From positions 1 through 64,000 of the forward strand of contig JAAOMT010000531.1 of assembly GCA_016748015.1 (NCBI GenBank): a stretch of DNA of 64,000 nt, in the 5' to 3' direction. The position numbers and the translations under genes were made by a program. The DNA comes from Geosiphon pyriformis uo1 (taxonomy: Eukaryota; Fungi; Glomeromycota). Positions 2,329 to 64,000 of this stretch are shown here, one piece after another; the first letter of the stretch is position 1; every line of letters starts with the position of its first letter. The notes under the pieces were generated by a model. It saw only the letters and a program-made list of their open reading frames with translations, did not search any database and had not been told where the DNA came from.

Positions 2329-2364
<36 letters not shown>

Positions 2365-12644: not shown

Positions 12645-12660
12645 CTACTGTTTATCAGTC

Positions 12661-14230: not shown

Positions 14231-14379
14231 TTTTTTTTTTTTTTTGTTAATGTATAGTCACACTGGTTTTTTATTAGTTTTGTCCCACCTGAAGGTATGG
14301 CATTTTCATAAAGCCAACTCACCCAATAATCTAAATTACAAGATGTGACTAACCACTAAGTGGTTAAGCCTAACTACAC
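14231..14379 (-). other. LINE 3' UTR: predicted multibranch RNA plus poly(A)
   Basis: GTGTAGTTA..TGACTATAC closing stem and three hairpins; homologous to the tails of all ORF1-only elements. Confidence 0.75.
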
Positions 14380-39329: not shown

Positions 39330-39961
39330 TTATCACATGTATTAGCCACAGATGTCATATAATTAGTCACTCTATTTTTAGATAGTAATTATTGACCTGA
39401 TCATTGACTTGATCATTGACCTAGTCGTTGACCTGGTCATTGACCACTTTTCATAGCTATATAAGCAATGAGTCTCTTAGTTGTAAAAAGACATTCAAGA
39501 ACAAGAATCAAATAAATAAAATAACAACTTCATCTCAATTACTCTCTTATCGCTAATTTCTCTTTTCCTACCTTCAAGTATCCGAACATCTTAGTATAAA
39601 AAATTACTTGTTAGCCTTTTTCTGTTTGAATAATTGTAGTATTTGAAGACTATTTGTATAAACGTGACTGAAAAGCACAAGTTGATACCTGATATTGAAT
39701 TCTAAGAGTGCCAACATGAAGCATAGAATTATACCAGTGGTTATCAATTGTTGACAGTACAGACTATTCTTCTACCTTCAGATTCCCTTATTACCTTTTG
39801 AAAAGAATAGCAACTGAGATATTTTATGAGACTGATCTCGCACATTGAATCCATACTCATTCAATTTGCTCATTGAAGTTGAATCCCCTTTGATTATTTC
39901 CATCACCCTACAATTCTGTTCTTCCTTGCTATCCGTTAGCTTGTTACTCCAACCCATAACA
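39299..39961 (+). repeat. 3' LTR of G5
   Basis: TGTTATGG..CCATAACA. Confidence 0.95.
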
Positions 39962-41559
39962 GTACCATTCTTGACTTATTAGTAGAGGCACAAATAATTG
40001 CCTTTGAAAAGATAAAACAGTTCCAAGAAAAGCTTAAGAAAAAAAAAACCTATAAAACACTTTTCTTAAGCATTAGTGACTTGGTTTTGGAATATCATTC
40101 AGATAAAGACAATGTCTATGGTAATAAATTCTCTAGCCAATAAAAAGAACTCTTTATAGTCAACAAAGTTTTGAACAATGGTTCTTATATTCTTCAATAT
40201 CAATCCAGAACAATCTTTAATAATCATCCTGTTCATGGCACACGATTCAAGAAATATCACAAATGATCTGATTGGTTATCTGTTGTGGTAATACTGACCC
40301 AAATGATCAGCAAAAATCAGATATAAATAAATGCACCACTCCCAAAACAGAAGTATCTTTAATCGACATGAACAATTATTTTTTGGATCAAAACATTCAA
40401 AACACTTTCTCTACTCTTCATGAGTATTAGATTAAAAACTATTCAAATACTACTCTGACCATTGGAAAACAAACTACAATAACTGACAACAGTGAAACAC
40501 ATACTGTTATTAGACCAAAGAAAACAACTACCAGAAGAGAAAAAATTGGTAGCAAAATGAATAAATATTTGCTGGAAAGTATAACAGCAGCAATACTTGC
40601 ACCTTCTATTACAATTGGAAAAACAATTAAAGAAATCTTGCCCATAGACAAAAACTTGTCATATGGAAGACAACTAGAACTTTATGGTCGCCTTGGTGAA
40701 ATCATAGAAGACATGAAGCTCATAAAAAAAACAACTTCTGAGATACAAGTGGAAATTTTGGACATTGGTCTCTTGGACACAAAGCTCATTTTGTCTCAAG
40801 TTTTATATATCTTATCCACAAAAGACTTCAACAAATTAGTTAGTTTTGAGTTAGATAAAACTCTTCAAATAAAGTATCCCTTAAATAGTTTGATTTTGCC
40901 AGAGCTCAATTTCTTTGGAGAGGATGATATTATGGTTGAAACTCATAGTTTTTATTAGTTATCACATGTATTAGCCATTGATGTCATATAATTAGCCACT
41001 CTATTTTTAAATAGTGATCATTGACCTGATCATTGACCACTTTCAATAGATATATAAGTAATGAGTTTCTTAGCTGTAGAAAAATATCAATGTAAGGAAT
41101 CAAGACAATTAAAGAAATAAAACAACAAACTTTCATCTCAAACATTCTCTTATTGCTAATTTCCCTTTCCCTACCTTCAAGTATCTGAACATCTTTTGGA
41201 TAAAAAATTACTTGTTGGCACTTTCCTGAAATTGCAGTATTTGAAGATTATTTAAATAAACATGACTGAAGAGCACAAATTAATACCTGATATTGAATTC
41301 TAAGAGCACTGACGTGAGACATAGAATTATACTAGTGGTTATCAATTGTTGACAGTACGGACTATCACTTTATCTTCAGATTCTCTTGTTACCTTTTGAA
41401 AAGAATAGCGACTGAGATATTTTATAAGACTGATCTTGCACATTGAATTCATACTCATTTAATTTGCTCATTGAAGTTGAATTTCCTTTGATTATTTCTA
41501 TCACTCTACAATCCTGTTCTCCCTTGCTATCTGTTAGCTTGTTACTCCAACCTGTAACA
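39962..41559 (+). mobile_element. Gypsy G6, 3' part (integrase end, ORF3 pseudogene 40368-40958, LTR 40928-41559)
   Basis: Resumes integrase sequence at GTAC after the G5 LTR. Confidence 0.9.
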
Positions 41560-42477
41560 ATAGTAATAAGCTGCCTTTAGCGGCTTCTGGTTCATTTTTT
41601 TCACCTTTGGCTGGTAGTTCTTCTCCAGTCAAAGTTTCTTCAAAAAGACACACTCAAGTTAGTCCCAGTGTTGTTTCCACTACTTCAAAAAGCCCAAAGA
41701 TTTTTAATAACAGACCAGTCAACAAGTTGGTCTTTTCTGCTCTTATCATTCCCACTATTACTTTTACTACTACTGCTTCACATATAGCCATGAAAGCCAA
41801 AAATTCTAAAAAACAACAGCAGGCAGTCACAACTGCTATGGTCATACCAAACTTCTTTGTGGTTCCAGATGAGATCTTTGGTAAGATCTCCACAGTAGCA
41901 ACCAGCCCTCTTTCTGATATAAATGGCAACAGCAGCAGCATATCTCCCAAAATAGACCAAGATCAACTACTGGCTGTGTTGTCTGATGTAGTAATCTCCA
42001 ACAGATCATTGCTAATTCCAGTAGCAAAACAGTCTATCAATCCAGATAATCTCAAAAATTGGACTGATCAGATGGAAATGGAATTAACTGTCTCTCTCCC
42101 AGTTTCTGGTGCTGCTGATAGTAGTGTTTGAGAAAATGTAAATGGTTGTCAAAGGTTCTCTGGTTGGGTGGCCTCCAATCTAGTACCTGGAGCTATATTC
42201 AAGATCAAAATGGCCCTGCTTGGTTTCTTGTTTCAGTTACTGCCTGGTTGTATTGGGCTTAAGTCAGTTTTACAAGATGCTGTTAAGTTGTTTTGTGTGG
42301 AATTTGCATCTCAGGAGTGTCTAAATGGTGCCACCAAAGTGGCCATCAGTGATGAGGTGTTTTTAACCACTTTTAAGATTGCACGGTCTTTTGGTGTGGC
42401 CTCTGTTTCTTCTCCTTTCTTGTTAGTTGCACTGCATAATATACCTTTGGGTATCTTTTCTAATGACATCAAAACAA

Positions 42478-44912
42478 AAAACTCTTTCTCTTCTAAATTT
42501 CATGATCACGAATAGAGCTAAGAGTAAAAAAGTTGCAAACGTTACTTTTCTTATAATAACTAATAAAGTTTTAACATGAGAGGGTCTCTCTGTTATTAAA
42601 GCAGCTAGACAAAATGTTCTGGCAACATTTTCTTTAAAAAATAATAGTAATAAGCTGCCTTTAGTAGCTTCTGGTTCATTTTCTTCTCCTTTGGCTGGAA
42701 GTTCTTCTCCAGTCAAAATTCTTTCAAAAAAGCACACTCAAGTTAGTCCTAGTGTTGTCTCTACCACTTCAAAAAGCCCAAAGATTTTTAATAACAGACC
42801 AGTCAACAAGTTGGTTTTTCCTGCTCTCACCACTTCTATTACTACTTTTACTACTACTGCTTTACAAATGGCCACAAAAGCAAAAAATCCCAAAAAACAG
42901 CAGCAGGCAGTCACAACTGCTATGGTCACACCAAACCTCTTTGTGGTTCCAGATGAGATTTTCAGTAAGATCTCCACAGTAACAGCCAGCCCTATTTCTG
43001 ATATGGATGGCAACAGCAGTGGCACATCTCCCAAGTTGGGCCAAGATCAACCACTGGCTGTGTTGCCTAATGTGGTACTCTCTGGCAGATCATCGCCAAT
43101 CTCAGTAGCAAAACAGTCCATCAATCCAGATGATCTCAAAGATTGAGCTGATCAGATGGAAATGGAATCAACTGTTCCCCCCTAGTTTCTGGTGCATCTG
43201 ATGCTGGTGCTTGGGAGAATATGAATGGGCGTCAAAAATTCTCTGGTTGGGTGGCCTCCAATCTTGTACCTGGTGCTACATTTAAGATTAAAATGGCTTT
43301 GCTCAATTCCTTGTTTCAGTTGCTGCCTGGTTGTATTGGGCTTAAATCTGTTTCACGAGATGCTGTCAAGTTGTTCTGTGTGGAATTTGCATCTCAGGAG
43401 TGTCTAAATGGTACTATCAAAGTGGCCATCAGTGATGAGGTTTTTTTGACCACTCTTAAGATTGCACAGTCTTCAGAAATGGCCTTTGTTTCTTCCCTTT
43501 CTTTGTCAATTACACTGCGTAATGTATCCTTGGGTGCCTCTTCTGATAACATCAAATCTGCTCTTAGCATTTTTCGTGTTGTCACTTCTGTTAAGTTGAA
43601 GCCTGCTGGCTTATGGCAATATGCTGTGGTTAGCTTTAAGAACATTTTTTCTGCTGCTGCTGCTCTTTCTAACTGGTCTGTGTTGGTCAGAAAAGATAGT
43701 GTTAGGATTCTTTCCATTACCAACCAAAAGAAAGTTATCTTCTCAAGCGATGCTTTCAAAGCTAAGCTGGTTAATCTTCCATTTGGCTGTACTGCATTTG
43801 AGATAAGTGATCTAGTTTTCCAAGTTGGTGGCCGTATGTGTTTCATTCCCCACTCCCCTAATTCCTATTGACATCAACACTTTGCAGTGATGACTTTTGG
43901 CTCCTTGGAATCTTTGAATGCTGCTGTTTCAAAAACCAGTACCTTATGTGGTTGCCACATCTGATAGGAAACTCTTGGATGTTGTCGCTGCTATAGATGT
44001 CAAAGTTTAGATCATTTGGCTGTGGACTGCAAGGTGTTACCACCTTTCCCTCCCAAACTCTTTTCTAATTCTGCTGGTGGTTCTATTATTTTCAAGTCAT
44101 TCCTTATTAAAGCTAAATCCTATGCCAAAGCTGTTACTTCTGTGGTTCCTCCTGTTGCTGCTGCTACTGATATGGGTCTGACTTCCAGTATCTCCCTTAG
44201 AGTTGTGGTGCTGCTGTTACCAGTTGTCTCCTCTGGTTCAGATGTTGCTGTTAATATTAGGTTGGCTTCTCTGGAAATCCAACTTAGTGAACTGTCTTTG
44301 TTGATCAAATCTATAGTTGAGCCTGTGGGTTTTTTGGTTGCATTGGTTACTATGTTATTGTCTACTCCACCAGTTATGGCAGAGGCAATGAAGAAAAGTG
44401 TGATTGGATTGAGAAACCAAATTAAAGCTGTATGTGCTATGGCTTTTATGCTACAAAAGGAAGTAGGGGCCCTCAAGTTGAGGAGTGAAAAGGTGCACTA
44501 TAATATATCTGATGATGAAGACATGGATGATAATAATGATAATAATGATGATGGTGATGCTAAAGATTTTTTGGTCTATAATAATATATTTGATGTGATA
44601 ATAGAGTTATAGGAGGTTCAATCCTCTAATATCAAGTCCGATCCAGATCAGACTGCTAAGTGGATGAGCAGTCTTGTTAAGAGTAGTCATGAACTTGTAT
44701 GCATTATGGGTAAGATGTATGAATTAGATATGTTTAATACATTAGGTAGCAAAGATAATATTAGCGTGTAGTTAGGACTTTCTGCTTGTGGTTAGCCACA
44801 TCTTGTAATATGTATTATTAAGTGAGCTGGCTTTATAAAACTGCCACACTACTGTGAAATAACTAATAAATGACCAGTGTGGCTACACATTAACAAAAAA
44901 AAAAAAAAAAAA
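42478..44912 (+). mobile_element. ORF1-only retroposon, subfamily B, copy H5, full length
   Basis: ATG at 42502; poly(A); TSD GACATCAAAAC 42465-42475 / 44913-44923. Confidence 0.92.
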
Positions 44913-45437
44913 GACATCAAAACTGCTCTTGGCATTTTTGGTGTTGTCACTTCTGTTAAGTTGAAGTCTGCTGGCTTATGGCAATATGCTGTGGTTAATT
45001 TTAAGGACATTTTTTCTGCTGCTGCTGCTCTCTCTAACTGGTCTGTATTGGTCAGAAAAAATAGTGTTAGGATTTTTCTTGTTGCCAACCAAAAGAAAGT
45101 TATTTCCTCAAGAGATGCATTCAAAGCTAAGTTGGTCAATTTTTTATTTGGCTGTACTACCTTTGAGATAAGCAATTTGGTCTCCCAAGTTGGTGGCCAT
45201 ATGTGTTTCATTTCTTGCTCCCTTGAATCTTATTGACATCAATGCTTTGCTGTGGTTACCTTTGATTCTTTGGAATCTCTGAATGTTGCTGTGTTAAAAA
45301 CTGGTACCTTGTGTGGTTGTCACATCTAGTGGAAAACTCTTGGGTGTTGCCGTTGTTACAGGTGTTAAGACTTGGATCATTTGGCTGTGAACTGCAAAAA
45401 GTTGTCTCCTTCCACACTCAAACTCTACTCCAACACT

Positions 45438-47864
45438 TTTTTTTTTTTTGTTAATGTGTAGCCACACCAGTCGTTTATTAGTTAGTCCACAGTACTGTAG
45501 TGGTTTTATAAAGCCAGCTCACTCAATAATATATATTACAAGATACGGCTAACCACAAGCAGAAAGTCCTAACTACATGCTAGTACTACCTTTGCTACCT
45601 AATGTATTAAACATATCTAATTTATACATCTTACCCATAATGCATACTAGTTCATAACTACTTTTAACAAGACTGCTCATCCACTTAGCCGTCTGATCTG
45701 GATCAGACTTGATATTAGAGGATTGAACCTTCCATAACTCCATCATTGCATCAAATGTATCATCATAGACTGAAAAATTTTTAGTATCACCATTATCATC
45801 ATCATCATCCATGTCTTCATTATCAGATATGTTATAGGGTACCTTCCTACTTCTCAACTTGAGAGCCCCCACTTCTTTCTGCAGCACAAAAGCCACAGCA
45901 CAAACAGCCTTAATTTGGTTTCCCAATCCAATCACACTTTTCTTCATTGCCTCTGCCATAACTGGTGGAATAAACAATAACGTAGTAACCAATGCAACCA
46001 AAGAACCCATAGGCTCAACTATAGATTTGATCAACAAAGACAGTTCACTAAGTTGGGTTTTCAGAGAAGCCAATCTAGTATTAACCGCAACATCTAAACC
46101 AGAGAAGGCAACTGGCAACAGTGGCACCACAACTCTAAGGGAGATACTAAAAGTCAGACCCATATCAGTAGCAGCAACAACAGAAAGAACCACAGAAGTG
46201 GCAGCTTTGGCATAGGATTTAGCTCTAATAAGGGATGACTTGAAAATGATGGGACCACCAGCAGAATTAGAAGAGAGTTTGGGAGGGAAAGGTGGCAACA
46301 CCTTGCAGTCTGCAGCCAAATGATCCAAACTTTGACATCTATAGTAGTGACAACATCCAAGAGTTTCCCACCAGATGCGGCAGCCACGTAAGGTACTGGT
46401 TTTTGAAACAGCAGCATTTAAAAATTTTAAGGAATCAAAGGTTACCACAGCAAAGCGTTGACATTGATAGTAATCAGGGGAGCAGGGAATAAAACATATA
46501 TGGCCATCAACTTGGGAGACCAGATCACTTATCTCAAATGCAGTGCAGCCAAACGGAAGATTAACCAGCTTAGCTTTAAAAGCATCTCTTGAGGAAATAA
46601 TCTTCTTTTGGTTGGCAATAGGAAGAATCCTAACACTATTTTTTCTGACCAATACAGACCAGTTAGAGAGAGCAGCAGCAGCAGAAGAAATGTTCTTAAA
46701 GTTAACCACAGCATATTGCCATAAGCCAGCAGGCTTCAACTTAACAGAAGTGACAACACCAAAAATGCCAAAAGCAGATTTAATATTACCAGAAGAGGCA
46801 CTCAAGGGTACATCATGCAGTGCAACTAACAAAAAAGGGGAAGAAACAGAGGCCACTTCTGAAGACCGTGCAATCTTAAAAGTGGTCAAAAAAACCTCAT
46901 CACCAATGGCCATCTTGGTAGCACCATTTAGACATTCCTGAAATGCAAATTCCACACAGAACAACTTGACAGCATCTCATGAAACCAATTTAAGCCCAAT
47001 ACAACCAGGCAGCAACTGAAACAAAGAACTGAGCAAAGCCATCTTGATCTTAAACATAGCACCAGATACAAGATTGGAGGCCACCCAACCAGAGAATCTT
47101 TGACATCCATTCACATTCACCTAAGCACCAGCATCAGATGCACCAGAAACTGGGGGGGAACAGTTGATTCCATTTCCATCTGATCAGCCCAATCTTTGAG
47201 ATCATCTGGATTGATGGACTGTTTTGCTACTGGGATTGGCAATAATCTGCCAGAGAGTACCACATCAGGCAACACAGCCAGTGGTTGATCTTGGCCCAAC
47301 TTGGAAGATGTGCCACTGCTGTTGCCATCCATATTAGGAATAGGGCTGGCTGCTGCTGTAGAGATCTTACTGAAGATCTCATCTGGAACCACAAAGGGGT
47401 TCAGTGTGACCATAGCAGTTGCAACTGCCTGCTACTGTTTTTTGGAATTTTTGGCTTTCACGGCCATTTGTGAAGCATTAGTAGTAGAAGTAATAGTGGG
47501 AATGGTGAGAGCAAGAAAGACCAACTTGTTGACTGGCCTGTTATTAAAAATCTTTGGGCTTTTTGAAGTAGTGGAGACAACACTGGAACTAACCCGAGTG
47601 TGTCTTTTTGAAAGAACTTTGACTGAGGAAGAACTACCAGCCAAAGGTGAAAAAAATGAACCAAAAGCTGCTAAAGGCAGCTTATTACTATTATTTTTTA
47701 AAGAAAATGTTGCCAGAACATTTTGTCTAGCTGCTTTAATAACGGAAAGACCCTCTCATGTTGAAACTTTATTAGTTACTATAGGAAAAATAATGTTTGC
47801 AACTTTTTTACTCTTAGCTCTATTTGTGGTCATGAAATTTAGAAGAGAAAAAGTTTTTTTTTTT
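45438..47864 (-). mobile_element. ORF1-only retroposon, subfamily B, copy H6, full length, inverted
   Basis: Poly(T) at the left end; 16-bp TSD ACTCTACTYCAACACT 45422-45437 / 47865-47880. Confidence 0.93.
45573..47833 (-). pseudogene. ORF1-like protein of H6 (~750 aa: S/T-rich N-terminus, RRMs, CCHC, coiled coil, acidic tail); 463-aa stretch still open
   Basis: DVPL..FGVV..WQYAVVNF and AKLVNLPFGCTAF RRM-like motifs, (C)YRCQSLDHLAADC, RLASLKTQLSELSLLIKSI heptads, poly-Asp. Confidence 0.85.
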
Positions 47865-48665
47865 ACTCTACTTCAACACTTCTGGTGGCCCCAAAATTTT
47901 CAAACCTTTATTTGCTGGATCTAAATCTTATGCCAAAGCTGCTGCTTTTGTGGTTTCTCCTGGTGCTGCTGCTGCTGATATGAACTTGAATCTCAGTGGT
48001 CCTCCCAAAACTACACCACCCATGGTATCTGCTATACTTTTTGTTCCCAAGTTTACTGTTGAATCTAGGTTGGCTTCCTTGGAATCCCATCTTAGTGAAC
48101 TCTCTGTGTTGATAAAATCTTTAGTTGAACCTATTGGTGCTCTTGTTGTATTGGTTACTAAACTGCTGTCTACTTCAACTACCATGGATGTGTCAATTAA
48201 AGAATGTATGAATAGTTTGGCTAAACAAAATAAAGGCTTGGCTGTTGTTGTTTCTGTGATACAGAAAAGCATTACACACCTTGAGAAAAGATGTGAACAG
48301 GCTGGCTTGGAGAATGGATCAGATGTTAATGACATAATTGATGATGATGATGATAAAAATTTTTCAGTTTATGATAATACTTTTGATGTTATGATGCACC
48401 TATGAGAAGATCAGCCTTTTAGTATCAAATTCAGTTCTGATCAGACTGCATTATGGGTAAGATGTATGAATTAGAAATGTTTGATACATTAAGTAGCAAA
48501 GGTAGTACTAACGTGTAGTTAAGGCTTTCCACTATGTGGTTAGTCACATCTTGTAAACTTTGTATTATTGAGTGAGCTGGCTTTATGAAAGCGCCAACTT
48601 TATTGTTGGACAAAACTAATAAACAATCAATGTGGCTACATGTTAACATAAAAAAAAAAAAAAAA

Positions 48666-50070
48666 GGTCTAATACAATTCTTTGTCTTTTTTTGTTCAAA
48701 ATGCTTTTGATTATAGCTCTTTTGTTTAGATCAAAGTTTTGTTCTCTCCTAATAATATTGTTTACTATCTGTCTCTACTGTTGTAGCCTGATCCTAGCTT
48801 GCAGTGTTGATCTGTATTCTTTTTTAATATTGAGTAATTCCATAATTAGCTTATTCTTTGGGAAAGTTATCAGATATGCATTAACTGCTTCAGGTTTCAG
48901 CTGTTTCCATTTGGCCAACAACTGCATAACATTGTTATTATGCATATCTGCATTGTTTACTCTTATTAGTTTGATTATATCAGCAACAATCCTAACAAGC
49001 TTGTGATCTATGCATTCTTTCTTTGAGTGTACAGATCGGGCTCCCACTTTCCTTTTTGGTAGGCACTTAGCAGCTTGTAACACAGTCTCCTTGATTGTAA
49101 GCCACATCTGGTTTAGATTATCATTGCTGTTATCTACTGATTTTTTTTGTGCTTTATCTGTTAGTTAATCAGATTTTCTAGCATAGATTTCTCATTGGAT
49201 TCCAGATGCTTTTTTAACATCAATCATAGTTGTGCTACACTTTTTTCTTCCAGATCTAGATTTTTTAGTGCCTGCCAAGATTCTATCAGATTGGATGATT
49301 GTTACTACTGCTTTGTAATCTGTGCTAAAAGATTCATTAACATCAATCACCCCAATATTTGTAACCAGTGATGCTGTAACTGCATTAGTAAATACATAGT
49401 TTAATTTTCTTTGTATACCATTTGATGCCCATGTTTTTTTTGAATTGTTTGTTGCATATGCCCCATATGTATCTATTAAATTCATATGTTGTAATGTTGC
49501 AACAGTTGGACAAACTTTGGCCTTATTTGTAGCATATGTTTCCTCAAGTGACTTGGATAACAGATCTTCATTCAAATTGCCTACAACTATGATAATCTCT
49601 TTGTTCTGTACAATGTCTCCTAAAAGTTTCCTGATTTCTTTAGCTACTGCTCTTTCAGTAGGCAATTTGGAAGCAGGCATGTACAGTCCTATTATGTACA
49701 CACTGACTCTTCCTCTAAATTTTAACCCCAAATACAACAACCTCTCATGAAACTCCTTGATTGTTTCTACATGGTGTATCCAACATTTTTTGACCAGTAT
49801 ACCAACACCAGTTCCTATTTGTTTCTCTGTACTTGATTTCCAAAAGGCATGATATTCATTAGAACCAAAAAATACACCTTTTTTTTTTGTTGGAGTTATT
49901 TTAGTTTCTGTAACAATCACAAAGTCAAATTGTTCTTCAATAATCCAACATAGCACCTCTTCAGCTTTACCAAGATTATTAAGCCCTCTAACATTAACAG
50001 TACCAATTTTCCAAGTGTCATTATTGGAGTAGTTCTGTTCTATGTTAGAATCAAGTGTGCTACATATCAT
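48666..50070 (-). pseudogene. LINE ORF2 N-terminus (APE endonuclease)
   Basis: IGTVNVRGLN, IVTETK, GTGVGIL, G(N)LNE, STD(Y)KAV. Confidence 0.93.
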
Positions 50071-52290
50071 CTGTTTCCATAAATTTAGATTCTCCAGCAG
50101 TAGAACTGCTCCAACTACTCTGTTTTTTCACTTGCTTCAATAACTTCAAAATAGGTTCCAAAGTTTTTTTAATTTTGTTGATTTCCAATTCTGGGTTATA
50201 TGTCTCTTTTTTTTTTGCTGGGGTAGATTTCAATGTAGTACTTTGGTTTGGTAACCCAATTTCTACCACTTTTTTTTTTTCTGAGGTGTTACTCAGCTGT
50301 TGAATAACTATTACTTTTTTACCTTTCTCTAAGTTTGGCAGCAACTGTATTCAGCAGTTTCGCCATTTCATTAACCTGCTGTTTTAGTTTATTAATTTCA
50401 CTCTTCCATGGTTGGTTAACTCTTTTTTTTGATTGTTCTTCCCTATTGTTTACTTGTGAACCAGGTTTCTGAGTATTGTTTGGATTGGTGTTGTTCCAAT
50501 TATGGGACAGTCTGAGTGCAGCCATATTAGCATATGATCTTTCACCAAAGGCCTTGATGTTTTCCTCTGGAATATTTCTCTTAACATACAGTTTTGCCAA
50601 TCTGATATTTTTTGGTATCTCCTTCTTTTTTCTTATGCAGGGTTGGACATTTTGAGACCAAATGTCCTACCTGGTAACAGAAGTGGCACTCTTTAACATC
50701 AGTAAGATCCAGTGGACCAGTGTGTCACCAATTACCAAGGGCTTTTTAGTGGTATTGTTGTGACTAGCTTTACTGTTAAATTTTATGTAAGCACAGTCTA
50801 TCCTTGTGTAATTTTTACTAGTTCTTAGGATGAAGCAGGATTGGGCTTTGATTTGATCTAAAGTAGTGTTCAAATAGTGAGCAGTACAGTTCTGTGGTAG
50901 GCCCACCAATTTAGTTTCCCAGGTTTTTCTCTGCTCAATGATTTTTTGGGTTCTAATCATTGGGTAAATTCTGACCACATATTTTTTGACCATGGTCAAC
51001 CATTGATCTACAGCTCTTGTTGCTTCTTCTTAGTTGCTATATTCTACTACTGCTAATTGCCATTTGCCAGCCACTCTGATTTGGATTTTATTGACCTTAT
51101 CAAATTCTTTCATAACAGCTCCCACCTCTTTGTTAGAGATGCCCAAGAGGATATCTCTTACCAGAACTTTTTTTTGACCAGCTATTTAAATGTTGACATC
51201 ATCAGTAGCCATCAAAAATAATTCAATTTCATTATTTGCCAGAATTTCTTTGGTTTGGTCTCTTCCAGCCACTTGGGAAAAATCAACTCTGATTTCTTGG
51301 TTTCTAGCCATTACAGCTCCAAAAGATCGTAAATTTATCCCACTTTCTTTCCCATGATTTTTTCAGGTATATCTAATGTTTGTATAAAAAGTACATGCTT
51401 TTTGGTCCCATGGACCACCGTTCTCTATTTTTCCTCCTGGTTTGCTTCCATAAGCATGGGTTTTTTGTCAAGTGACTTATTACTGTATTGTTCTGGACTT
51501 AGACTAGCCATTTTGCTTGATAGGCTTGATTCAAAGTCTTTTATGTCTTCTGCAATATCATCCGCATTAGGCTTATCTCTGTTTGCATTAAATAGATTGT
51601 CTATTTGTTCTTTATTCTCTAATGCAGAATTTTCTCTGTTGATCCTATCCAAAATATCAGAATTGCATTTTCTCAGAGCTGCTTCTATTTGTGTAGCTCT
51701 GTCTCTGTCTTCTTTAGGCACTTTGGATGGTTCATCTATTTTTTTCAGGAACTTTGAGGCTTCTTTTTTACCAGTCCAAGCTTTCATTTGAAATTTATTG
51801 CTATTTCTTCCTTTGTTGAACATTGGCTGTAAGACAAAGTTATCAGTTTGAACAGATGTGGTTTCGGGTAGGTCTTTTTTAGATATTTGGGTAAATTTCT
51901 CAATTAGCCCTTTTACACTTAATCTTTTAATGTGTCTGTATTTTTCATTGGCTTTTTCCTCCAATCTGTTAGCTGTTATCAGAGAAAAGTCTGCTGCTCT
52001 CCTATATAGAACTGTTCTTTTCGATGTGTTGGCTATTTTAAAGGGTGTATTGTCTCCACTACTTGTGTTCACACTTCCAAATGGCTTATTAATAGTTTCA
52101 AATCTAAATAGAGGTGTAATAGGTCTAGCAGTTTCCATAGTTAATGACTTTTGTGAATTAGTGTTAATGTCTTCTCCTTCAGTAGTAGAAGTTATGTTCC
52201 CTTCCACTTGGTATTCACTATCAATAATCTTTACACTTGTACTTCTTTACATGACTGTTGTCACTTTACTGTTGACATTGTTATCAGACA
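50060..52290 (-). pseudogene. LINE ORF1 (RRMs, CCHC knuckle, coiled coil); start position approximate
   Basis: KLVGLPQNCTAH, CHFCYQVGHLVSKC-type knuckle, RSYANMA; ends METDDM*. Confidence 0.85.
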
Positions 52291-52435
52291 CTTTTAAGTC
52301 TGTTGTAATAGTAATAATAATATATTTCAGTTAAAGGTTTCTTTGCAAAAACTTATTTTTCAAATTTGAGATGTAATAAATTGTGTGGTAATAGTCAAAG
52401 AGAGAAAAAAGCTTTTTTTGTGGTAATAGAGCATA

Positions 52436-52512: not shown

Positions 52513-54898
52513 ATAACATTTAATTGATGGTAGTTGACACAGAAGTGTAGAGTTCCACTTTTTTTGAATATTACTACAACTGAAAAAGTCTATTCACTCT
52601 TGGTTTTTTGTATGAATCCAAGATCTTTCATCTGGTTTATCTCTTTCTTGATAAATTTATTATTATGTCAATTGAATTGATAAGGCTTCAAATGGATGGA
52701 ACAAGTTTTTTTTGTGGTGATGGTGTGTTGTATCACATGGGTTCATTCAGGAGTATTATCTTCTTTTGAGATAACTGGGCTATTTCTGGCCAACAAATTT
52801 TCAATATCCACTTTTCTTTCTTCAAAGGAAGGTTTTTTTTGTTTTACAACTAGTAATTGGATTTCAGGTGGTTTATTCTCAAAAAACTTTTGTATTTTTT
52901 TAAGTTTTTCTTAAGGTATCAAGCTAATTGGTTCCCAATCTTTGTAATAGATTAGACAAGATTTGCATTTATCACTTGGTGAATACAAAGGTTTATTACA
53001 CCAGCACTGTGCACAAGGGCCATGCTATCAATAATTGTATTTGGCTTTCTTGCTAAGTTTTTTGTCAAAAGTTCTTCTGAGGATATCATAGTAGGACCAG
53101 CAGCTTGCCATTTACCATAATTTTTTCTTTGTCAGCTTTAACATTGTCTAGTGGCTTGCCATTACTGGTAAAGATAGTATAGGTGAGTTCAACAGTTTCT
53201 TTTTGTTTTTCTTAATCTTCATTATCACTTTTATCATCATCTGATTCATCTGATTGTTTTTCTTCTTGGTTCTGTTTGGTTGCTAAAGGAGTTGTCCAAT
53301 AATGGCATTTAACCACAATGGGTTTTTCACCACATCTGATGATTAACTCGGAAAGTTCATAATCAAGTACTGCTTTGGCTTTCTTAAGTTACTTATTACC
53401 AACAATGATGGTATACTCTTTTGCTTTAGATACTTCCATATCTGTTTCAATACTAATACCATTGATGTAAACAGGAACAGCTTTGGCTATATCCAGACCT
53501 TTTTTTTGTCACCATGTACATTGGTTATAGGCTGGATAGAAGATTCATTAATTTTTCTTTCAATGGCTTCCAGAAAGTGTTTGGCAATTACACTAACAGA
53601 TGATCTACTGTCTAAGATCAAATTAATGAAGTAGCCAGCCACTTGGGCTTTATAAATCAAAGGAGTAACATTGCTGTTGTTAGCAAGTCCAGCTTGATGA
53701 GAGCACTTGTTAGTTTTTGGTGTCTTTTTCTTTGATATTAAGGATTTGTGAAAATCTTTTCTGAACTGTAAATGGGTTATTAGTTGGCCAAATATAATGT
53801 GTGTTGGGGTTTTCATGAGATCTTTAACAACAGAATAAGGGCCAGATTTTTGTACTATTTCTGAAAATTCTAACTTTGGAGGATTTTTAAAAACTTTAGC
53901 CTTTGGTGGCTTATTGTTGTCAGCAGCAGAAGTTGAGACTTTGTTGGGATTTAGAATGAAATCAACCTTGGCTTTCTTTTTTTTTCTTGTTAAGTCAGAG
54001 GTGTTGATTGCCAGTTCATCTATATCATGATTATCATCAGTTAGATTAAAAGTGTAAAAGAGGTTTTTTTCTGGTTGGCTTGTACTCTTACCCTTTGGAA
54101 ATGCACCTACCAGTTTAAAGGCTAATAAACAGTGGCTTCAACTAGGAGATTCTCTCCAAAGAAATTGATGTTGGCATGATTGGGTCTTTGATTGGGAACA
54201 TTATTACTGTTGGGTCTGTTATTCTGAGTGTCATTATTTCTAGGAGCTAAAAGAGGCAATAGAAGATTGTTGCAGTCTTTTGAGAAGTGTCTAGTTAGTC
54301 CACAGCAATAACATACAGGTGGGCTATGATTTTGCTGTCTTTGATATGATGGTTGTTGGGGCTGATTGAAGTAGGATTCAAATTTGGATCTTTGGAATTG
54401 TTGATTCTCTCTAACTGCTTGGGTCAAAGGTTTTAATAGCTGGGCAAAATTTGCTGTAAGCCTATCTATTAATTGTTCATTTGGATCTTGAGTTTGGGCA
54501 GCAAAAAAGGTAGCAGTCATTTGTGGAGCAGGAGCCATAATAGAAACAAGAGCAAAAACTAGAAGGGTGGATCTCAGATGCATCCTTTGGTTATCTTTTA
54601 TTCTCTGGACAAGTTCAATAGCCATATCCATTGTGGAATTATCATTCAAGACCAGAAGAGGCCAAAGAGCATATGATAGATCAGTTTTCAGTTCTTTTGT
54701 GAAGGAATGTATTTTCTGCTCTTCTGTTCAATTTCTTCCAGAGTTTACCTGTTTAATAAGTTTTCTTATTGCTTTGGCATATTTCGTCACAATCTTACCA
54801 GGGCCTTGAGTTCTTTTTTCTAATTCCATACACCATTTGGATATTAAGATAAGAATTCTAAATTTAGTTTCAAACCAGGTAGTGAAAGAGATGTTGTG

Positions 54899-57330
54899 AA
54901 AAACTCTTTCTCTCCTAATTTTCATGACCATGACTAGAGCTAAGAGTAAAAAAGTTGCAAACAGTACTTTTTCTATAGTAACTAATAAAGTTTTAACACA
55001 AGAGGGTTTCTCTGTTATTAAAGCAGCTAAACAAACCATTCTGGCTACATTTTCTTTAAAAAATATTAGTAAAAAGCTGCCTTTAGCAGCTTCTGGTTTA
55101 TTTTCTTTACCTTTGGCTGGTAGTTCTTCTCCAGTCAAAGTTCCTTCAAAAAGGCACACTTGGGTTAGTCTTAGTGTTGTCTCTACCAGTTCAAAAAGCC
55201 CAAAGATTTTTAATAACAGATCAGTCAACAAGTTGGTCTTTTCTGCTTTCACCACTCCCACTATCACTTCTGTTACTACTGCTTCACAAATAGCCGTGAA
55301 AGCAAAAAATTCCAAAAAACAGCAGCAGACAGTCACAACTGCTATGATCACACTAAAATTTTTTGTGGTTCCAGATGAGATCTTCAATAAGATCTCCACA
55401 GTAGCAGCCAGCCTTCTTCTTGATATAGATGGCAACAGCAGCAGCATATCTCTTAAGATGGGCCAAGATCAACCACTGGCTGTATTGCCTGATGTGGTAC
55501 TCTCCAGCAGATCATTGCTAATTCTAGTAACAAAACAGTTCATCAATCCAGATGATCTCAAAGATTGGGCTGATCAGATGGAAATGGAATCAACTGTCTC
55601 TTTCCCAGTTTCTGGTGCTGCTAATGGTGGTGCTTGGGAAAATGTAAATGGTCATCAAAGATTCTCTGGTTGGGTGGCCTCTAATCTAGTACCTGGTACT
55701 ACATTTAAGATCAAAATGGCCCTGCTTGATTCCTTGTTTCAGTTACTGCCTGGTTGTATTGGGCTTAAGTCAGTTTCACAAGATGCTGTTAAGTTGTTCT
55801 GTGTGGAATTTGTATCTTAGAAGAGTCTAAATAGTGCCACCAAAGTGGCCATCAGTGATGAAGTTTTTTTGACCACTCTTAAGATTGTATAGTTTTCTGG
55901 TGTGGCCTCTGTTTTTTTCCCTTCCTTGTCAGTTGTACTGCATAATGTACTCTTGGGTACCTCTTCTAATGACATCAGAACTGCTCTTGGCATTTTTAGT
56001 GTTGTCACTTCTGTTAAGTTAAAGCCTGCTGGCTTATGGCAATATGCTGTGGTTAACTTCAAAAACACTTCTTCTGCTGCTGCTGCTCTCGCTAATTGGT
56101 CTGTATTGGTCTAAAAAGACAGTGTTAAGATTTTTTCTATTGTCAACCAAAAGGAGGTTATCTTCTCAAGAGATGTATTCAAAGCTAAATTGGTTAATCT
56201 TCCATTTGGCTGTACTGTCTTTGAGATAAGTAATTTGGTCTCCCAAGTTGGTGGCCATACATGTTTCATTCTTTGCTCCCCTAAATCTTATTGATGTCAA
56301 TGTTTTGCTGTGGTTACTTTTGATTCTTTGGAATTTCTGAATGTTGCTGTGTCAAAAACTGGTACTTTGCATGGTTGTCACATCTAATGGGAAACTTCTG
56401 GATGTCATCGCTGCTATAGGTGTCAAGACTTGGATCATTTGGCCATGGACTACAAGAAGTCACCTCCTCCTCTACCCAAACTCTTCTCTAATACTTCTGG
56501 TGGTCCAAAGGTTTTCATATTTTTATTCACTGGATCTAAATTTTATGCCAAAGCTGCTGCTTTTGTGGGTCCTCCTGGTGCTGCTGCTGCTAATATGAAC
56601 TTGGATCTCGGTGGTCCTCCCAAAACTACAACACCCATGGTGCCTGCTATACCTTTTGTTCTCAATTCTGCTGTTGAATCTAGGTTGGTTTTTTTGGAAT
56701 TCCACCTTAGTGAACTATCTGTGTTAATAAAATTCTTAGTTGAACCTATTGGTGCACTTGTTGTATTGGTTACTAAATTGCTGTCTACTCTAACTGCTGT
56801 GGATGTGTCAGTTAAGGAATGTGTAGATGGGTTGGCTAAGCAAAATAAAAGCTTGGCTGCTATTGCTTCTGTGATGCAGAGAAGAATAACACACTTTGAG
56901 AAAAGATGTGAACAGGCCAGCTTGAAGGATAGATCAAATGTTGATGACATGGCTGATAATAATGATAATAATGATAAAGATTTTTCAGTTTATGATAATA
57001 TCTTTGATGTTATGATGCACCTATGGGAAGGTCAGCCTTCCAGTATTAAATTCAGTCCTGATCAGACTGCTAAGTGGATGAGTAGTATGGTTAAGAATAG
57101 TCATAAGCTTGTTAGCATTATGGGTAAGATATACAAATTAAATATGTTTGATACATTAAGTAGTAAAGGTAGTACTAGTGTGTAGTTAGAGCTTTCCACT
57201 AGTGGTTAGCCACATCTTGTAAACTTTGTATTATTGGGTAAGCTGGCTTTATGAAAGTGCTAACTTTATTGTTGGACAAACTAATAAATGATCAGTGTGA
57301 CTACACATTAACAAAAAAAAAAGAAAAAAA
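54899..57330 (+). mobile_element. ORF1-only retroposon, subfamily A, copy H7, full length
   Basis: 14-bp TSD GAAAGAGRTGTTGT 54884-54897 / 57331-57344; poly(A). Confidence 0.93.
54924..57185 (+). pseudogene. ORF1-like protein of H7 (753 codons in one frame, premature stops only)
   Basis: ORF-track pieces 54924-55820, 55902-56114 and 56430-57185 share one frame; ends KGSTSV*. Confidence 0.85.
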
Positions 57331-58897
57331 GAAAGAGGTGTTGTCTTCTCCAACATTTGCTGGTGCCCATCTAATAATTCTTTGCTGAGCATTGGCATTG
57401 GTTTCTTGTGAGAACCAAGTAGCAAAAGAGCCTTGAAGGTAGCCAACAACAATTTGGAACTTGTATTCATTATCATATTGGTTGGCTGTGGCCACTCTTT
57501 CAAAGTTGTCCAACCATTCAATTGGATTTTGTGCATCACCTCTAAACAAGGGTAATGAAGTGTTGTTTCTTCTTTTCAAAGTGGTTTGTGTGCCTTAGAG
57601 GGCAATTAAAATGTTCTGTTGTATAGAATCATTGGCCATTGGTTCAGGAGTTACTGTTTAAGTAGAATGATCTAATTCACTTAAGAAAAAATCAAAAACA
57701 GAAGCAGTTTGATAGCTTTTTTTTTCTGTTTCAAAGGGGGTTTTAGATAGCTGATGGGCAGCAATCCAAATGTAAATTTGGTGATTCAGGTATTTAGAAT
57801 TAATAGGCTGTTGTTCAAAAGTTGTAGAGTATAAAAGTTTGTTGATGCTGTTGTTTCTTTCTTCAAAGTTGTCTTCAAAATAAGCTTGGTCAAAGTAATA
57901 AGTTGTATAGGCTGTGTAGGTTTCAGCTGAATGCTCATTCAGGAACCAGTTCCAAAAATCTTGGAATTGTCTACTGGATTGTTTTTCAATGAGGAAGCAA
58001 ATCAAGCAGAAGGACAAAGAATTAAGTTTAATAAAGTCTAGATCATTTTTGTTGTGTGCTTTAAAGTGTTCTTCTGATTGTTGTAGCAGGTATGAATAAT
58101 CACCCATGCAATAAAAAACAAAGTGAATTTTGACAATCTCACAGGAAGCACTATTTTTATATTATGGATTGGAGTAACAAGCTAATAAATAGCAAGGGAG
58201 AATAGGATTGTAGGATAATGAAAATAATCAAAGAAAATTCAACTTCAAAGAACAAATTAAATAAGTATGGATTCAATGTGTGAGATCAGTCTTATAAAAT
58301 ATCTCAGTCACTATACTTTTCATGGATAACTGGGAAATTTGAAGGTAGAGGAATAGTTTATACTGTTAACAAATAATCACACCTGGTATAATTCTATGTC
58401 TCATGTTAGCACTCTTATAATTTAATATCAGGTATCAAATGTATTCTTCAGTCATGTTTTATTCAATAATTTTTAAATGCTGCAATTACATGTTTCAGGA
58501 AAAAAGTAGGTAAAGACCAATAAATATCTTTTATCCCAAGATGTTTGGATATTTGAAGGTAGGGAAAGGGAAAGGGAAATTAGTGATAAGAGAATGATTG
58601 AGATGAAAGTTGTTATTTTATTTATTTAATTTCTTTGATTTCTACATGCTTTTCTATAGCTAAGAGATTTATTGCTTATAAAGCTATCAAAAGTGGTCAA
58701 TAATCAAATCAACAACTAGATCAATAATCAGGTCAATGATTAGATCAATGATTAGGTCAATAGTCAGGTCAATGGTCAGTTCATTGATTACTTTCTAAAA
58801 ATAGAATGGCTAATTTATGTGACATTAGTGGCTAATACATGTGATAATTAATAAGAAATATAAGTTTCAACCATAACACTAGTGAAAGATCTAAGCC

Positions 58898-61329
58898 AAA
58901 ACTCTTTCTCTCCTAAATTTCATGACCATGAATAGAGCTAAAAGTAAAAAAGTTGCAAACATTACTTTTTCTATAGTAACTAATAAAGTTTTAACACGAG
59001 AGGGTTTCTCTGTTATTGAAGCAGCTAAACAAAACGTTCTGGCAACATTTCCTTTAAAAAATAATAGTAATAAGCTGCCTTTAACAGCTTCTGGTTCATT
59101 TTCTTCTCTTTTGGCTGGAAGTTCTTCTTTAGTCAAAGTCCTTTCAAAAAAGCACACTCGGGTTAGTCCTAGTGTTGTCTCTACCATTTCAAAAAGCCCA
59201 AAAATTTTTAATAACAGACCAGTTAACAAGTTGGTCTTTCCTGCTCTTACCACTCTCACTACTACTTCTACTACTACTGCTTCACAAATGGCTGCAAAAG
59301 CAAAAAATCCCAAAAAACAGCAGCAGGCAGTCACAACTGCTATGGTTACACCGAACCCCTTTGTAGTTCCAGATGAGATTTTCAGTAAGATCTCCACAGT
59401 AGCAGCCAGCCCTATTCCTGATATGGATGGCAACAGCAGCAACACATCTCCCAAGTTGGGCCAAGATCAACCACTGGCTGTGTTGTCTGATGTGGTACTC
59501 TCTGGCAGATCATCGCCAATCCCAGTAGTAAAACAGTCCATCAATCCAGATGATCTCAAAGATTGGGCTGATCAGATAGAAATGGAATCAACTGTTCCCT
59601 CCCCAGTTTTTGGTGCATCTAATGCTGGTGCTTAGGAGAATGTAAATAGACATCAAAGATTCTCTGGTTGGGTGGCCTCCAATCTTGTACCTGATGCTAT
59701 GTTTAAGATTAAGATGACTTTGCTCAGTTTCTTGTTTCAGTTGCTGCCTGGTTGTATTGGGCTTAAATCTGTTTCATGAGATGCTGTTAAGTTGTTCTGT
59801 GTAGAATTTGCATCTCAGGAGTGTCTAAATGGTGCTACCAAAGTGGCCATTAGTGATGAGATTTTTTTGACCACTCTTAAGATTGCATGGTCTTTAGGAG
59901 TGGCCTCTGTTTTTTTCTCTTCTTTGTCAGTTGCACTGTGCAATATACCCTTAGGTGCCTCTTTTGATGACATCAAATCTGCTCTTGGCATTTTTGGTGT
60001 TGTTACTTCTGTTAAGTTGAAGCCTGCTGGCTTATGGCAATATGCTGTGGTTAGCTTTAAAAACATTTTTTCTGCTGCTGCTGCTCTCTCTAACTGGTCT
60101 GTGTTGGTCAGAAAAGATAGTGTTAGGATTCTTTCCATTGCCAACCAAAAGAAGGTTATCTCCTCAAGAGATGCTTTCAAAGCTAAGCTGGTTAATCTTT
60201 TATTTGGCTGCACTGCATTTGAGATAAGTGATCTAGTCTTCCAAGTTGGTGGCTGTATGTGTTTCATTCTCCGCTCTCCTGATTCCTATTGACATCAATG
60301 CTTTGCAATAGTAACCTTTGGCTCCTTGGAATCTTTGAATGCTGCTGTTTTAAAAACCAGTATCTTATTGACTGCTGCATTTGGTGGGAAACTCCTGGAT
60401 GTTGTCACTGCTATAGATGTCAAAGTTTAGATCATTTGGCTGTGGACTGCAAGGTGTTGCCACCTCCCCCTCCCAAACTCTCTTCTAATTCTGCTGGTGG
60501 TCCCATTATTTTTAAGTCATTCCTCATTGGAGCTAAATCCTATGCCAAAGCTACCACTTCTGTGGTTCCTCCTGTTGCTACTACTGCTGATACGAGTCTG
60601 GCTTCTAGTACCTCCTCCAGAGTTGTGGTGCCGCTGTTGCCAGTTGCCTCCTCTGGTTCAGATGTTGCTGTTAATGCTAAGTTGGCTTCTCTGGAAATCC
60701 AACTTAGTGAACTATTTTTGTTGATCAAATCTATAATTGAGCCTGTGAGTTCTTTGGTTGCATTGGTTACTATGTTACTGTCTATTCCACCAGTTATGAC
60801 AGAGGCAATGAAGAAAAGTGTGATTGGATTGGGAAATCAAATTAAAGCTGTACATGCTGTGGCTTCCGTGTTGCAAAAGGAAGTGGGGGCCCTCAAGTTG
60901 AAGAGTGGAAACGTGCATTATAACATATTTGATGATGAAGACATGAATGATGATGATAATGATGATGATGATGATGGTGATGCTAAAAATTTTTCGGTTT
61001 ATGATGATACATTTGATGCGATGATGGAGTTATGGAAGGTTCAATCCTCTAATATCAAGTCCGATTCAGATTAGACTGCTAAATGGATGAGCAGTCTTGT
61101 TAAGAGTAGTCATGAACTTGTATGCATTATGGGTAAGATGTATGAATTAGATATGTTTAATACATTAGGTAGCAAATGTAGTACTAGCATGTAGTTAGGG
61201 CTTTCCACTTGTGGTTAGCCACATCTTGTAATATGTATTATTGGGTGAGCTGGCTTTATGAAACTGCCACACTACTATGAAATAACTAATAAATGACCAG
61301 CGTGGCTACATGTTAACAAAAAAAAAAAA
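58898..61329 (+). mobile_element. ORF1-only retroposon, subfamily B, copy H8, full length
   Basis: ATG at 58922, stop at 61194, poly(A); 17-bp TSD TCAACCATAACACTAGT 58867-58883 / 61330-61346 spanning the G8 LTR end. Confidence 0.93.
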
Positions 61330-61934: not shown

Positions 61935-64000
61935 TATCACACAAAGAAGTACAAGTGTAGAGATTATTGATAGCAAATACCAAGTAGAGGGAAGCATAAC
62001 TTCCACTACTGAAAAAGAAGACATTAGCACTAATCTACAAAATTCATCAACTGTGGAGACTGCAAGACCTAGTACACCTCTATTTAGATTTGAAACTACC
62101 AATAGACTAATTGGAAGTGTAAACACAAGTAGTGGAGATGATATGCCCTTTAGAATAGCCAACACATTAAAAAAAACAGCTTTATATAAGAAAGTGGCAG
62201 ACTTTTCTCCAATAACAGCTAACAGATTAGAGAAAAAAGCCAACAAGAAATACAGACATATTGGAAGAATAAGTGTAAAAGAGCTAACTGAGAAATTCAA
62301 CCAAATAACTGAAGAAAATTCACCCGAAACCACATCTGTCCAAATCAATAACTTTGTCTTGCAACCAATGTTTAACAAATGTGAAAATAGCAACAAATTT
62401 CAAATGGAAGCTTGGACCAGTGAAAAGGGAGCCTCAAAGTCCCTGAAAAAAATAGATAAACCATCCAAAGTGCCTAAAAAAAACAGAAAAAGAGCTGCAC
62501 AAATAGAAGCAGCTCTGAGAAAGTGCAATCCTGATATTTTGGACAGGATCAACAGAGGAAATTCTGTAATAGAGAATGAAAAGCAGATGAATAATCCATT
62601 TAACACAAACAGAAATAAGCCTAATATAGATGATGTCACAGAAGACATAAAAGATTCTGAATTAAGCCTATCAAGCAGAATGGCTAGTCCAAGTTCAGGA
62701 CAATAGAGTAGTAAATTACTTGGCAAAAAACCCATGCTTATGAAAACAAATCAGGAGGATGAATGAAGAATGGTGGTCTATGGTACCAAAAGGCATGTAC
62801 TTTTTGTGCAGGCATTAGATATATCTGAAAAGATCATGGAAAAGAAAGTGGAATGGATTTATGATCTCTTGGAAAATATAAGGTACCTTTTGGGAGCTGT
62901 AATAGCTAGAAACCAAGAAATTAGAGTTGATTTTTTCCAAGTGGCTGGAAGAGACCAAGCCAGAGAAATCCTGGCAAATAATAAAATTGAATCATTTTTG
63001 ATGGCTACTGATGGTGTCAACAACCAAATGGCTGGTCAAAGAAAAGTCTTGGTAAGAGACATCCCTTTGGTCATCTCTGACAAAGAAGTGGGAGCTGCCA
63101 TAAAAGAATTTGGTGAGGTCAAAAAAATCCAAATCAGAGTGGCCAGCAAATGACAATTAGCAGTGGTTAAGTATAACAACCAAGAAGAAGCTACCAGAGC
63201 TGTAAATCAATGGTCGACTATGGTCAGAAAAAATGCAGTCAGAATTTACCCAATAATTGAAACTCAGAAGATTATTAAGCAGAGAAAAACCTGGGAAGCT
63301 AAATTGGTGGACCTACCACAAAACTGTACTGCTTACTATTTGAGCACCACTCTGGATCAAATCAAAGCCCAATTCTGCTTTATTCTAAGAACTAGTAAAA
63401 ATTATACAAAGATGGGCTGTGCTTACATAAGATTTGACAGTGAAGCTAACCACAACAATGCCACTAAAAAGCCCTTGGTAATTGGTAATATACTGGTCTA
63501 CTGGGTGCCTACTAATGCTAAAAAGTGCCACTTTTGTTACCAGATAGGGCACTTGGTTTCAAAATGTCCAACTTTGCATAAGAAAAAAGAAGGAGATACC
63601 AAGAAAGTTATCAACAACATCAGGTTGGCAAAACTGTATATTAAGAAAAATGTTCCAGAGGAAAACATCAAGGCCTTTGGTAGAAGATCATATGCTGATA
63701 TGGCTGTACTTAGACTGTCTTATAACTGGAACAACACCAATCCAAAAACCTAGTTCACAAGTAAACAATAGAAAAGAACAAGGAAAAAAAGGGGTCAACC
63801 AATCATGGAAGGCTGAAATTAATGAATTGAGAAAGCAGGTTAATAAAATGGCAAAACTGCTGAATGCAGTGGCTGCCAAATTTGGAGTAACAATAGAGAA
63901 AGAAAAAGAAGCAATAGTTGCTCAACAGCCAAGTAACACCTTAGAAAAAAAAAAAAGATAGAAAATAGATTATCAAGCCAAAGTACTACATTCAAATCTA
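61935..64000 (+). mobile_element. LINE copy L4, ORF1 region (slightly 5'-truncated, runs off the window)
   Basis: METARPSTPLFRFET, LVRDIPL, AKLVDLPQNCTA, CHFCYQIGHLVSKC. Confidence 0.88.

Follow-up and report, generated by a model that had tools for sequence, protein, structure and literature searches.

A poly(A)-ended, ORF1-only retroposon family in Geosiphon pyriformis that was probably mobilised by the enzymes of a co-resident LINE

Geosiphon pyriformis is a Glomeromycotina fungus that lives in symbiosis with cyanobacteria. The stretch of DNA analysed here, called the window below, is the first 64 kb of contig C594, and the genome to which it belongs was searched as 128 Mb in 792 contigs. 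At 54899-57330 on the forward strand, the window carries one full-length copy of what we call the H element, a retroposon of ~2.4 kb that ends in poly(A) and whose frame resembles the first open reading frame (ORF1) of long interspersed nuclear elements (LINEs). The parts of this copy are the following:

54899-57330 (+): full-length H copy, subfamily B, with 5' untranslated region (UTR), 754-codon frame, 3' module and poly(A)
54884-54897 (+): 5' target-site duplication (TSD) of this copy, GAAAGAGATGTTGT
54924-57185 (+): ORF1-like frame, with disordered N-terminus, tandem RNA-recognition motifs (RRMs), CCHC knuckle and coiled coil
57173-57316 (+): 3' module common to H and the LINE tail, with AATAAA inside and a 13-bp stem pairing both ends
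57317-57330 (+): poly(A)
57331-57344 (+): 3' TSD of this copy, GAAAGAGGTGTTGT

Read from the ATG at 54924, the frame runs through 754 codons with zero frameshifts and five in-frame stops. The first-pass annotation, made from the sequence of the window, had described an ORF of ~750 codons; the length holds, but the five stops make it a read-through frame and not an intact gene. No H copy in the window is open, and the longest ORF among them is 463 aa. A majority-rule reading of 27 copies of subfamily A gives a single open frame of ~757 codons; the founders of H were therefore intact. The absence of a reverse transcriptase (RT) and of an endonuclease from H, claimed at the first pass, is borne out: a Pfam search matched RRM_1 only, at E 3.7e-8, and the 57 full copies that we compared are collinear, 2.2-2.44 kb each, with the frame followed directly by the tail. 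This tail begins 13 nt before the stop codon, and no enzyme region lies between it and the frame. H copies start with AAAAACTC and end in ...CATTAAC(A)n, with AATAAA ~25 nt before the poly(A). In many copies, an extra 5-20 nt stands between the TSD and the canonical 5' end; thus the 5' UTR, first put at ~24 nt, is often longer. An Rfam search of the window matched no family.

A blastn search of 54899-57330 against the window finds 8-9 H copies, namely four full-length, one split, two cut, one 5'-truncated and one composite. Those other than the copy above are:

58898-61327 (+): full-length H copy, A-like; TSD of ~20 nt
42477-44912 (+): full-length H copy, subfamily A, nested in another H copy; TSD GACATCAAAAC; the target shows the duplicated bases
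45437-47858 (-): full-length H copy, subfamily A, nested in the composite H copy; TSD of 15 nt; 463-aa open stretch
41561-48665 (+): composite host H copy in pieces 41561-42475, 44913-45436 and 47865-48665; its 5' side is cut by a Gypsy 3' long terminal repeat (LTR) at H position 169
1325-4212 (+): split H copy in a Gypsy leader, in pieces 1325-2247 and 2724-4212
2248-2723: 5'-truncated H copy that splits the copy at 1325-4212; 13-nt TSD ATGGTGCCACCAA
20347-21714 (+): H copy at the same Gypsy-leader site as the copy at 1325; 3' part removed by an LTR
28874-29851 (+): 3' part of an H copy; 5' side cut by a Gypsy 3' LTR, 3' flank being the same Gypsy-leader site

The family extends far beyond the window. 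A genome search with H returned 68 scored matches from 1269 first-look candidates, most of them spanning query positions 1-2432 in ~2.4 kb. The 25-nt motif of the H 5' end, with up to three mismatches allowed, has 229 matches in the genome and 0 in a reversed control, so that no fewer than 229 copies have their 5' end intact. The 57 full copies divide into subfamily A (27), at ~90% identity to the window copy 45437-47858, and subfamily B (30), at ~85% identity to 54899-57330.

H copies bear the hallmarks of target-primed reverse transcription. TSDs of 8-20 nt, all different in sequence, are present in 32 of the 57 copies, at a threshold set above the 95th percentile of controls that paired 5' and 3' flanks from different copies. 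In the nested pair, blastn shows that 14 and 17 nt of the host copy are present twice at the two insertion sites, where the flanks read GACATCAAAAC and GTGTTG(A/G)AGTAGAGT; these duplicated bases are direct proof of insertion with TSD. Poly(A), variable TSDs and 5' truncation, the last exemplified by the copy at 2248-2723 with its 13-nt TSD, had been noticed from the beginning, and nesting can now be added to them.

Part of the local copy number has another origin. The 1.37-kb repeat that adjoins several H copies is the 5' LTR (680 bp, TGTTATGG...CCATAACA) of a Gypsy element together with its leader, with these matches in the window:

18977-20346, 11-1316, 5135-5789, 11269-12647, 28135-28872, 32636-33665, 39295-39961, 40935-41559 and 57487-58881: Gypsy LTR/leader

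The copies beginning at 1325, 20347 and 28874 (H1, H3 and H4) occupy one Gypsy-leader site (GAGAGAGCTGCCACA), each with the same extra 17 nt, and thus derive from one insertion that has spread with Gypsy or by duplication. The eight copies counted at the first pass are therefore there, but these three are not independent insertions. It could be argued from this common site, and from the packing of copies in islands described below, that most H copies are passive, moved as Gypsy passengers or by segmental duplication within repeat islands. However, the distinct TSDs in more than half of the full copies, as well as the 5'-truncated and nested insertions, speak for H's own movement, and we consider general passivity very unlikely. 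Gypsy has also damaged H: two copies are cut at positions 169 and 1391 by Gypsy 3' LTRs, each after a polypurine tract. An assembly gap (N run) begins at ~22226, inside the LTR adjoining the cut H3 copy.

The window also holds a LINE, named here the partner LINE, in the following pieces:

14231-18979 (-): partner LINE, 5'-truncated, with APE, RT, RNase H and a 3' UTR of ~300 nt
14231-14386 (-): terminal module of the LINE, homologous to the H tail
48658-52430 (-): 5' part of the LINE, with 5' UTR, ORF1 at ~52207-50320 (RRM, CCHC, coiled coil) and the ORF2 start at 50070
62392-64000 (+): LINE ORF1, which runs off the window end

That this LINE might consist of ORF2 only was considered and rejected: the boundary at LINE query position 1368 is a truncation against a Gypsy LTR, and the copy at 48658-52430 has an ORF1. 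Homology between the H and LINE 3' UTRs, the basis on which a dependence on the LINE had been proposed, is confirmed at 84% identity over 159 nt between the H tail and LINE 14231-14386 (blastn). H has only the last 156 nt of the ~300-nt LINE 3' UTR. In 59 of the 75 H tails, one and the same base opens the homologous part, which takes in the entire 3' UTR of H as well as its final codons; outside this tail, no nucleotide similarity is detectable between the coding parts of H and LINE. An alignment of 27 tails has a mean column identity of 84% and long invariant blocks, and when group majorities are compared, the tail of the LINE is 76% identical to those of A and of B, and A and B are 87% identical to each other. 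The tail is predicted to fold into a multibranch structure closed by a 13-bp stem, which pairs the first and last bases of the module, and single tail copies fold better than their shuffles (z -3.05, -2.4, -2.1 and -1.25). At the other end of the elements, the LINE 5' end at 52390-52430 (-), AAAAAAAGCTTTTTTCTCTC, resembles the H 5' end at 54899-54925 (+), AAAAACTCTTTCTCTC; H and LINE may share a start-site motif as well as a tail.

A structure was modelled with AlphaFold (AF2) for P0084, an intact protein of family C, which is related to H (see below), from a 30-sequence alignment, with a mean predicted local distance difference test (pLDDT) score of 52.8. In this model, residues 1-231 are disordered, and alpha/beta domains at 235-300, 324-400 and 401-471 have pLDDT of 70-87; they are followed by the CCHC knuckle, by helices at 541-620 (coiled coil) and by a helical end. 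The segments 320-397 and 399-475 both resemble canonical RRMs (Z 11-12, root-mean-square deviation 1.5-2 A, ~76 residues), and the pair matches RRM1-2 of PABP with Z 14 over 158 aligned residues. The knuckle downstream of the second RRM has the spacing C-x2-C-x4-H-x4-C. An RRM immediately upstream of a CCHC knuckle defines the Type I ORF1 protein (ORF1p) of the I, Jockey, R1, Tad1 and plant L1 clades (classes of Khazina & Weichenrieder; PMC4120745). The RRMs of H stand directly before the knuckle, and its protein thus has the Type I ORF1 layout, so that the structure model agrees with the proposed relationship to LINE ORF1.

The first-pass annotation had called the frame a divergent paralogue of the LINE ORF1, and this is well supported. 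The quoted motifs were located in the LINE at 63046-63576 (+) and 50772-51167 (-), and the H frame is 33-35% identical to the window LINE ORF1 over 130-180 residues (tblastn E 8e-29 and 3e-19). P0231, a metagenomic relative with 28% identity to P0084, is encoded immediately before an ORF2 with RT and RNase H. The low identity to the LINE ORF1, together with the context of P0231, identifies the H frame as a LINE ORF1 paralogue and not as a deleted LINE copy. In a protein search with the longest open H piece, all 120 matches listed are 'hypothetical protein G9A89_*' of Geosiphon pyriformis, and the protein searches gave no high-identity match outside Geosiphon. A feature search of the ESM Atlas gave no usable match.

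Two sets of comparisons separate the active life of the family from its decay. Majority-rule sequences were used for the ratio of nonsynonymous to synonymous change (pN/pS), with shifted reading frames as a control for strong mutation bias. Between the A and B majorities, pN/pS over the whole frame is 0.38 in the true frame, as against 0.77 and 1.10 in the shifted frames, and over codons 191-500, the RRM core, it is 0.16 as against 1.08 and 1.18. Single copies compared with their own majority give 0.57-0.62 in the true frame and 0.55-0.58 in the shifted ones. The low in-frame ratio between A and B, together with a decay of copies that is blind to frame, points to purifying selection while the family was active and neutral decay since insertion. 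The frame is thus under purifying selection between the subfamilies, as it should be if it encodes the working protein that had been proposed.

With this evidence at hand, two alternative origins can be assessed. The first is that H represents recurrent internal deletions of the resident LINE that have lost ORF2, rather than a lineage that propagates itself. The common 3' module fits this, and so do the first ~20 nt, which are similar in the two elements (AAAAACTCTTTCTC in H, AAAAAAGCTTTTTTCTCTC in LINE). However, a deleted LINE would hardly have a frame so distant from the LINE ORF1, no nucleotide similarity outside the tail, identical boundaries in all copies, and subfamilies with selection on the frame between them; nor were ORF2-bearing copies found, as copies throughout the genome are uniformly ~2.4 kb, frame then tail. 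We give this origin almost no credence. The second is that the frame belongs to a retro-copied family of host RNA-binding genes and not to a transposon. Many copies are indeed annotated gene models, the RRM fold is of the cellular type and the frame has been under purifying selection. Against this stand the homology of the frame to ORF1s upstream of RT-bearing ORF2s, the LINE tail, the hundreds of dead copies with TSDs and the lack of high-identity matches outside Geosiphon, and a host gene origin is scarcely plausible.

The mutations that have accumulated in H copies are strongly biased, with a transition/transversion ratio of 6.6; C-to-T plus G-to-A account for 69% of them. Per site, CpG has a substitution rate of 0.36 and the remaining positions one of 0.07, a difference of about five-fold. 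RIP-like mutation (repeat-induced point mutation) was rejected, as C-to-T occurs without CpA bias, and the pattern fits methylated cytosines in repeats instead. A stop at codon 457 of the subfamily B majority was first taken for a shared ancestral one. This was rejected: it is a recurrent CGA to TGA/CAA change in both subfamilies, in which codon 457 has become TGA or CAA independently in ~90% of copies. Subfamilies A and B are 91-98% identical over H positions 1-1350 (window 54899-56248), where the synonymous divergence (dS) is 0.04 in codons 1-190, and 64-85% identical over the last third of the frame (H 1351-2250, window 56249-57148), where dS is 0.5-0.76. Such a mosaic indicates either recombination or a constraint on the nucleotide sequence of the 5' part, perhaps through an internal promoter.

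H A/B and the partner LINE have a restricted and common distribution. They occur together in ~100-kb intervals on the same ~40 contigs, and 31 of the 32 contigs with the APE domain of the partner LINE also carry H A/B; eight H 5' ends lie at 320-376 kb of C660 and seven at 1-88 kb of C594. The next-best APE matches, which belong to other LINE families, fall to 28-33% identity and are located elsewhere. The islands number about one per contig, often near contig ends, with examples at C660:320273-376056, C615:158750-225370, C594:1-100000 and C710:1236117-1319359. These islands may correspond to centromeres or to heterochromatin of another kind, or simply to sites at which the assembly breaks. 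A telomeric role like that of HeT-A in Drosophila was rejected: the window has no telomere repeats, the genome has TTAGGG arrays at contig ends, and H copies, rather than forming head-to-tail terminal arrays, are inserted into other repeats with TSDs and in either orientation. The partner LINE and H A/B are of similar age, with 80-87% identity among the copies of each, and subfamilies A and B as well as the partner LINE look extinct.

We propose that H is a non-autonomous non-LTR retroposon that codes only for an ORF1-type RNA-binding protein and uses LINE enzymes in trans, a reading that we regard as likely. In the cycle that we envisage, H would be transcribed from its defined 5' end and polyadenylated at its own AATAAA. 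The RNA would be translated into the protein with tandem RRMs, CCHC knuckle and coiled coil, which would presumably coat its own RNA. This RNA would then be copied into the genome by target-primed reverse transcription, for which the endonuclease and RT would be supplied in trans by the co-resident APE-RT-RNaseH LINE, whose 156-nt module makes up the whole H 3' UTR. The tail and the co-location suggest that the ORF2 protein (ORF2p) of the partner LINE was the enzyme that H used, and the tail is accordingly a candidate for the element that this ORF2p recognised.

Several observations weigh against this proposal. All 57 A/B copies are broken, with at least one stop each, and among the partner LINE copies seen none has a full ORF2, the open stretches of ORF2 reaching 758 aa at most. 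Three of the window copies owe their number to Gypsy or duplication and not to their own retroposition. The H and LINE tails differ at ~24% of positions at the majority level, each with its own diagnostic bases, and common ancestry alone could explain part of their likeness. Pairs in the stem of the tail that seemed compensatory (columns 8/142 and 9/141) were rejected: they are CpG sites, and the joint counts (UA 7, CG 7, UG 6, CA 7) are those of independent decay; such covariation, at the level of chance, is therefore not counted as support. Co-location could reflect accumulation in one repeat-rich compartment and not a common enzyme. A search of sequencing runs gave three runs from one sample, one of them holding part of the stretch, and none is recorded as RNA.

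Some of these points favour a specific alternative, in which another RT, from a different LINE family or from several, mobilised H, and the likeness of the tails is only common descent. The divergence of the majority tails would be expected in that case, the genome does contain the other LINE families with APE domains at 28-33% identity, and the tail of family C is different. On the other side, conservation is far higher in the tail than in any coding part, the homology has one fixed starting point, the base of the stem, and H A/B share with the LINE their very restricted distribution and similar age. We therefore judge another enzyme source to be unlikely, and retain the partner LINE as the probable donor.

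H A/B are not the only elements of this kind in Geosiphon. The proteins of family C, among them P0084 (699 aa), align collinearly with the H frame and are ~50% identical to it, and at least three copies are free of stops (C651:1005200-1007296, C659:642422-644536 and C705:145693-147804); the C651 locus as a whole is delimited as C651:1005200-1007431. A pattern of the degenerate last codons of P0084 followed by ten A's 80-140 nt later has 25 matches, which fall in ~16 loci and take in the intact C651 copy; a reversed control has 0. C-terminal codons followed by a short UTR and poly(A) mean that family C is also ORF1-only. The genome pattern search found no H-type tail block after a family C stop codon, which fits a different tail in this family. 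Family C copies are dispersed, away from the H A/B islands, and the intact 699-aa frames suggest that the family may still be active. A bolder picture, which we hold only tentatively and consider doubtful as it stands, is a guild of protein-coding LINE parasites in Geosiphon, the first described outside animals: at least three ORF1-only families would each be matched by their tail to a different LINE, with C active and A/B aimed at ~40 possibly centromeric islands of ~100 kb.

H resembles HAL1 and HeT-A in its way of working and is a member of neither, as its ORF1 is of Type I and it is not telomeric. HAL1 is described as a non-autonomous L1 derivative that encodes ORF1p only, is mobilised by LINE machinery and has several origins (PMC5753468, citing Smit 1999 and Bao & Jurka 2010). 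Like HAL1, H is an ORF1-only LINE derivative, and in Geosiphon too there are several families (A, B and C). However, the HAL1 ORF1 is L1-type, that is, Type II with coiled coil, RRM and C-terminal domain, whereas that of H is Type I and ~33% identical to the ORF1 of its LINE; indeed, the Pfam search did not match Transposase_22, the L1-type ORF1, and H is thus outside HAL1 proper. H also differs from HAL1 in its fungal host and in the structured 156-nt 3' module common to H and LINE, as in stringent pairs of short interspersed nuclear elements (SINEs) and LINEs. For the L1 enzyme, the general view is that it recognises little apart from poly(A).

In the stringent SINE-LINE pairs, the non-autonomous partner carries the 3' end of the LINE, which is taken as the recognition site of the RT, according to PMC5786205. 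SINEs are short, non-coding and transcribed by RNA polymerase III, whereas H is 2.4 kb long, codes for a protein, has an AATAAA and is presumably transcribed by RNA polymerase II. About 40% of the telomeric transposable element families of drosophilids are ORF1-only, and the recently derived ones share UTRs with their progenitor (PMC13534243). With HeT-A and the other ORF1-only telomeric elements of the Jockey clade, H has in common a Type I-like ORF1, the lack of RT and, probably, dependence on a related autonomous element; the Drosophila elements insert at chromosome ends as telomeres, while H inserts with TSDs into repeats. Among fungi, the EKA family of Blumeria graminis, derived from the LINE Satine, comprises more than 1000 ORF1-derived sequences annotated as genes (PMC4641428). 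The fungal genome and the annotation of ORF1-derived sequences as genes are common to both cases, but EKA sequences are truncated or degenerate copies of a full LINE co-opted as effectors, whereas H is an ORF1-only unit with its own ends, TSDs and tail. Our literature search found no paper on an ORF1-only retroposon in fungi, and a survey of transposable elements in arbuscular mycorrhizal fungi has no mention of ORF1 or of non-autonomous LINEs.

If H is read in this way, an early-diverging lineage of fungi has also given rise to half-LINEs like those of mammals and Drosophila, here with an ORF1 of Type I and a shared, structured tail as in SINEs. A fungal half-LINE beside those of mammals and flies makes the keeping of ORF1 and discarding of ORF2 look like a general parasitic strategy. 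H also offers a natural test case for which part of a LINE RNA is recognised by its RT, with a coding part only ~33% identical and a tail that is still recognisable.

There is a practical consequence for the annotation of this genome. The first-pass annotation expected H to be annotated as many hypothetical genes, and indeed more than 100 NCBI gene models named 'hypothetical protein G9A89_*' are copies of the H family. They inflate the gene count of Geosiphon and the reported share of its genes with transposon sequence in exons. Introns placed over the stops leave the model of the copy described here, P0061 (54924-57185), as well as over 100 further G9A89 models, 30-100 aa short of the frame. 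Some gene models run H together with LINE or with further H copies, as in P0121 (1376 aa) and P0125 (1845 aa).

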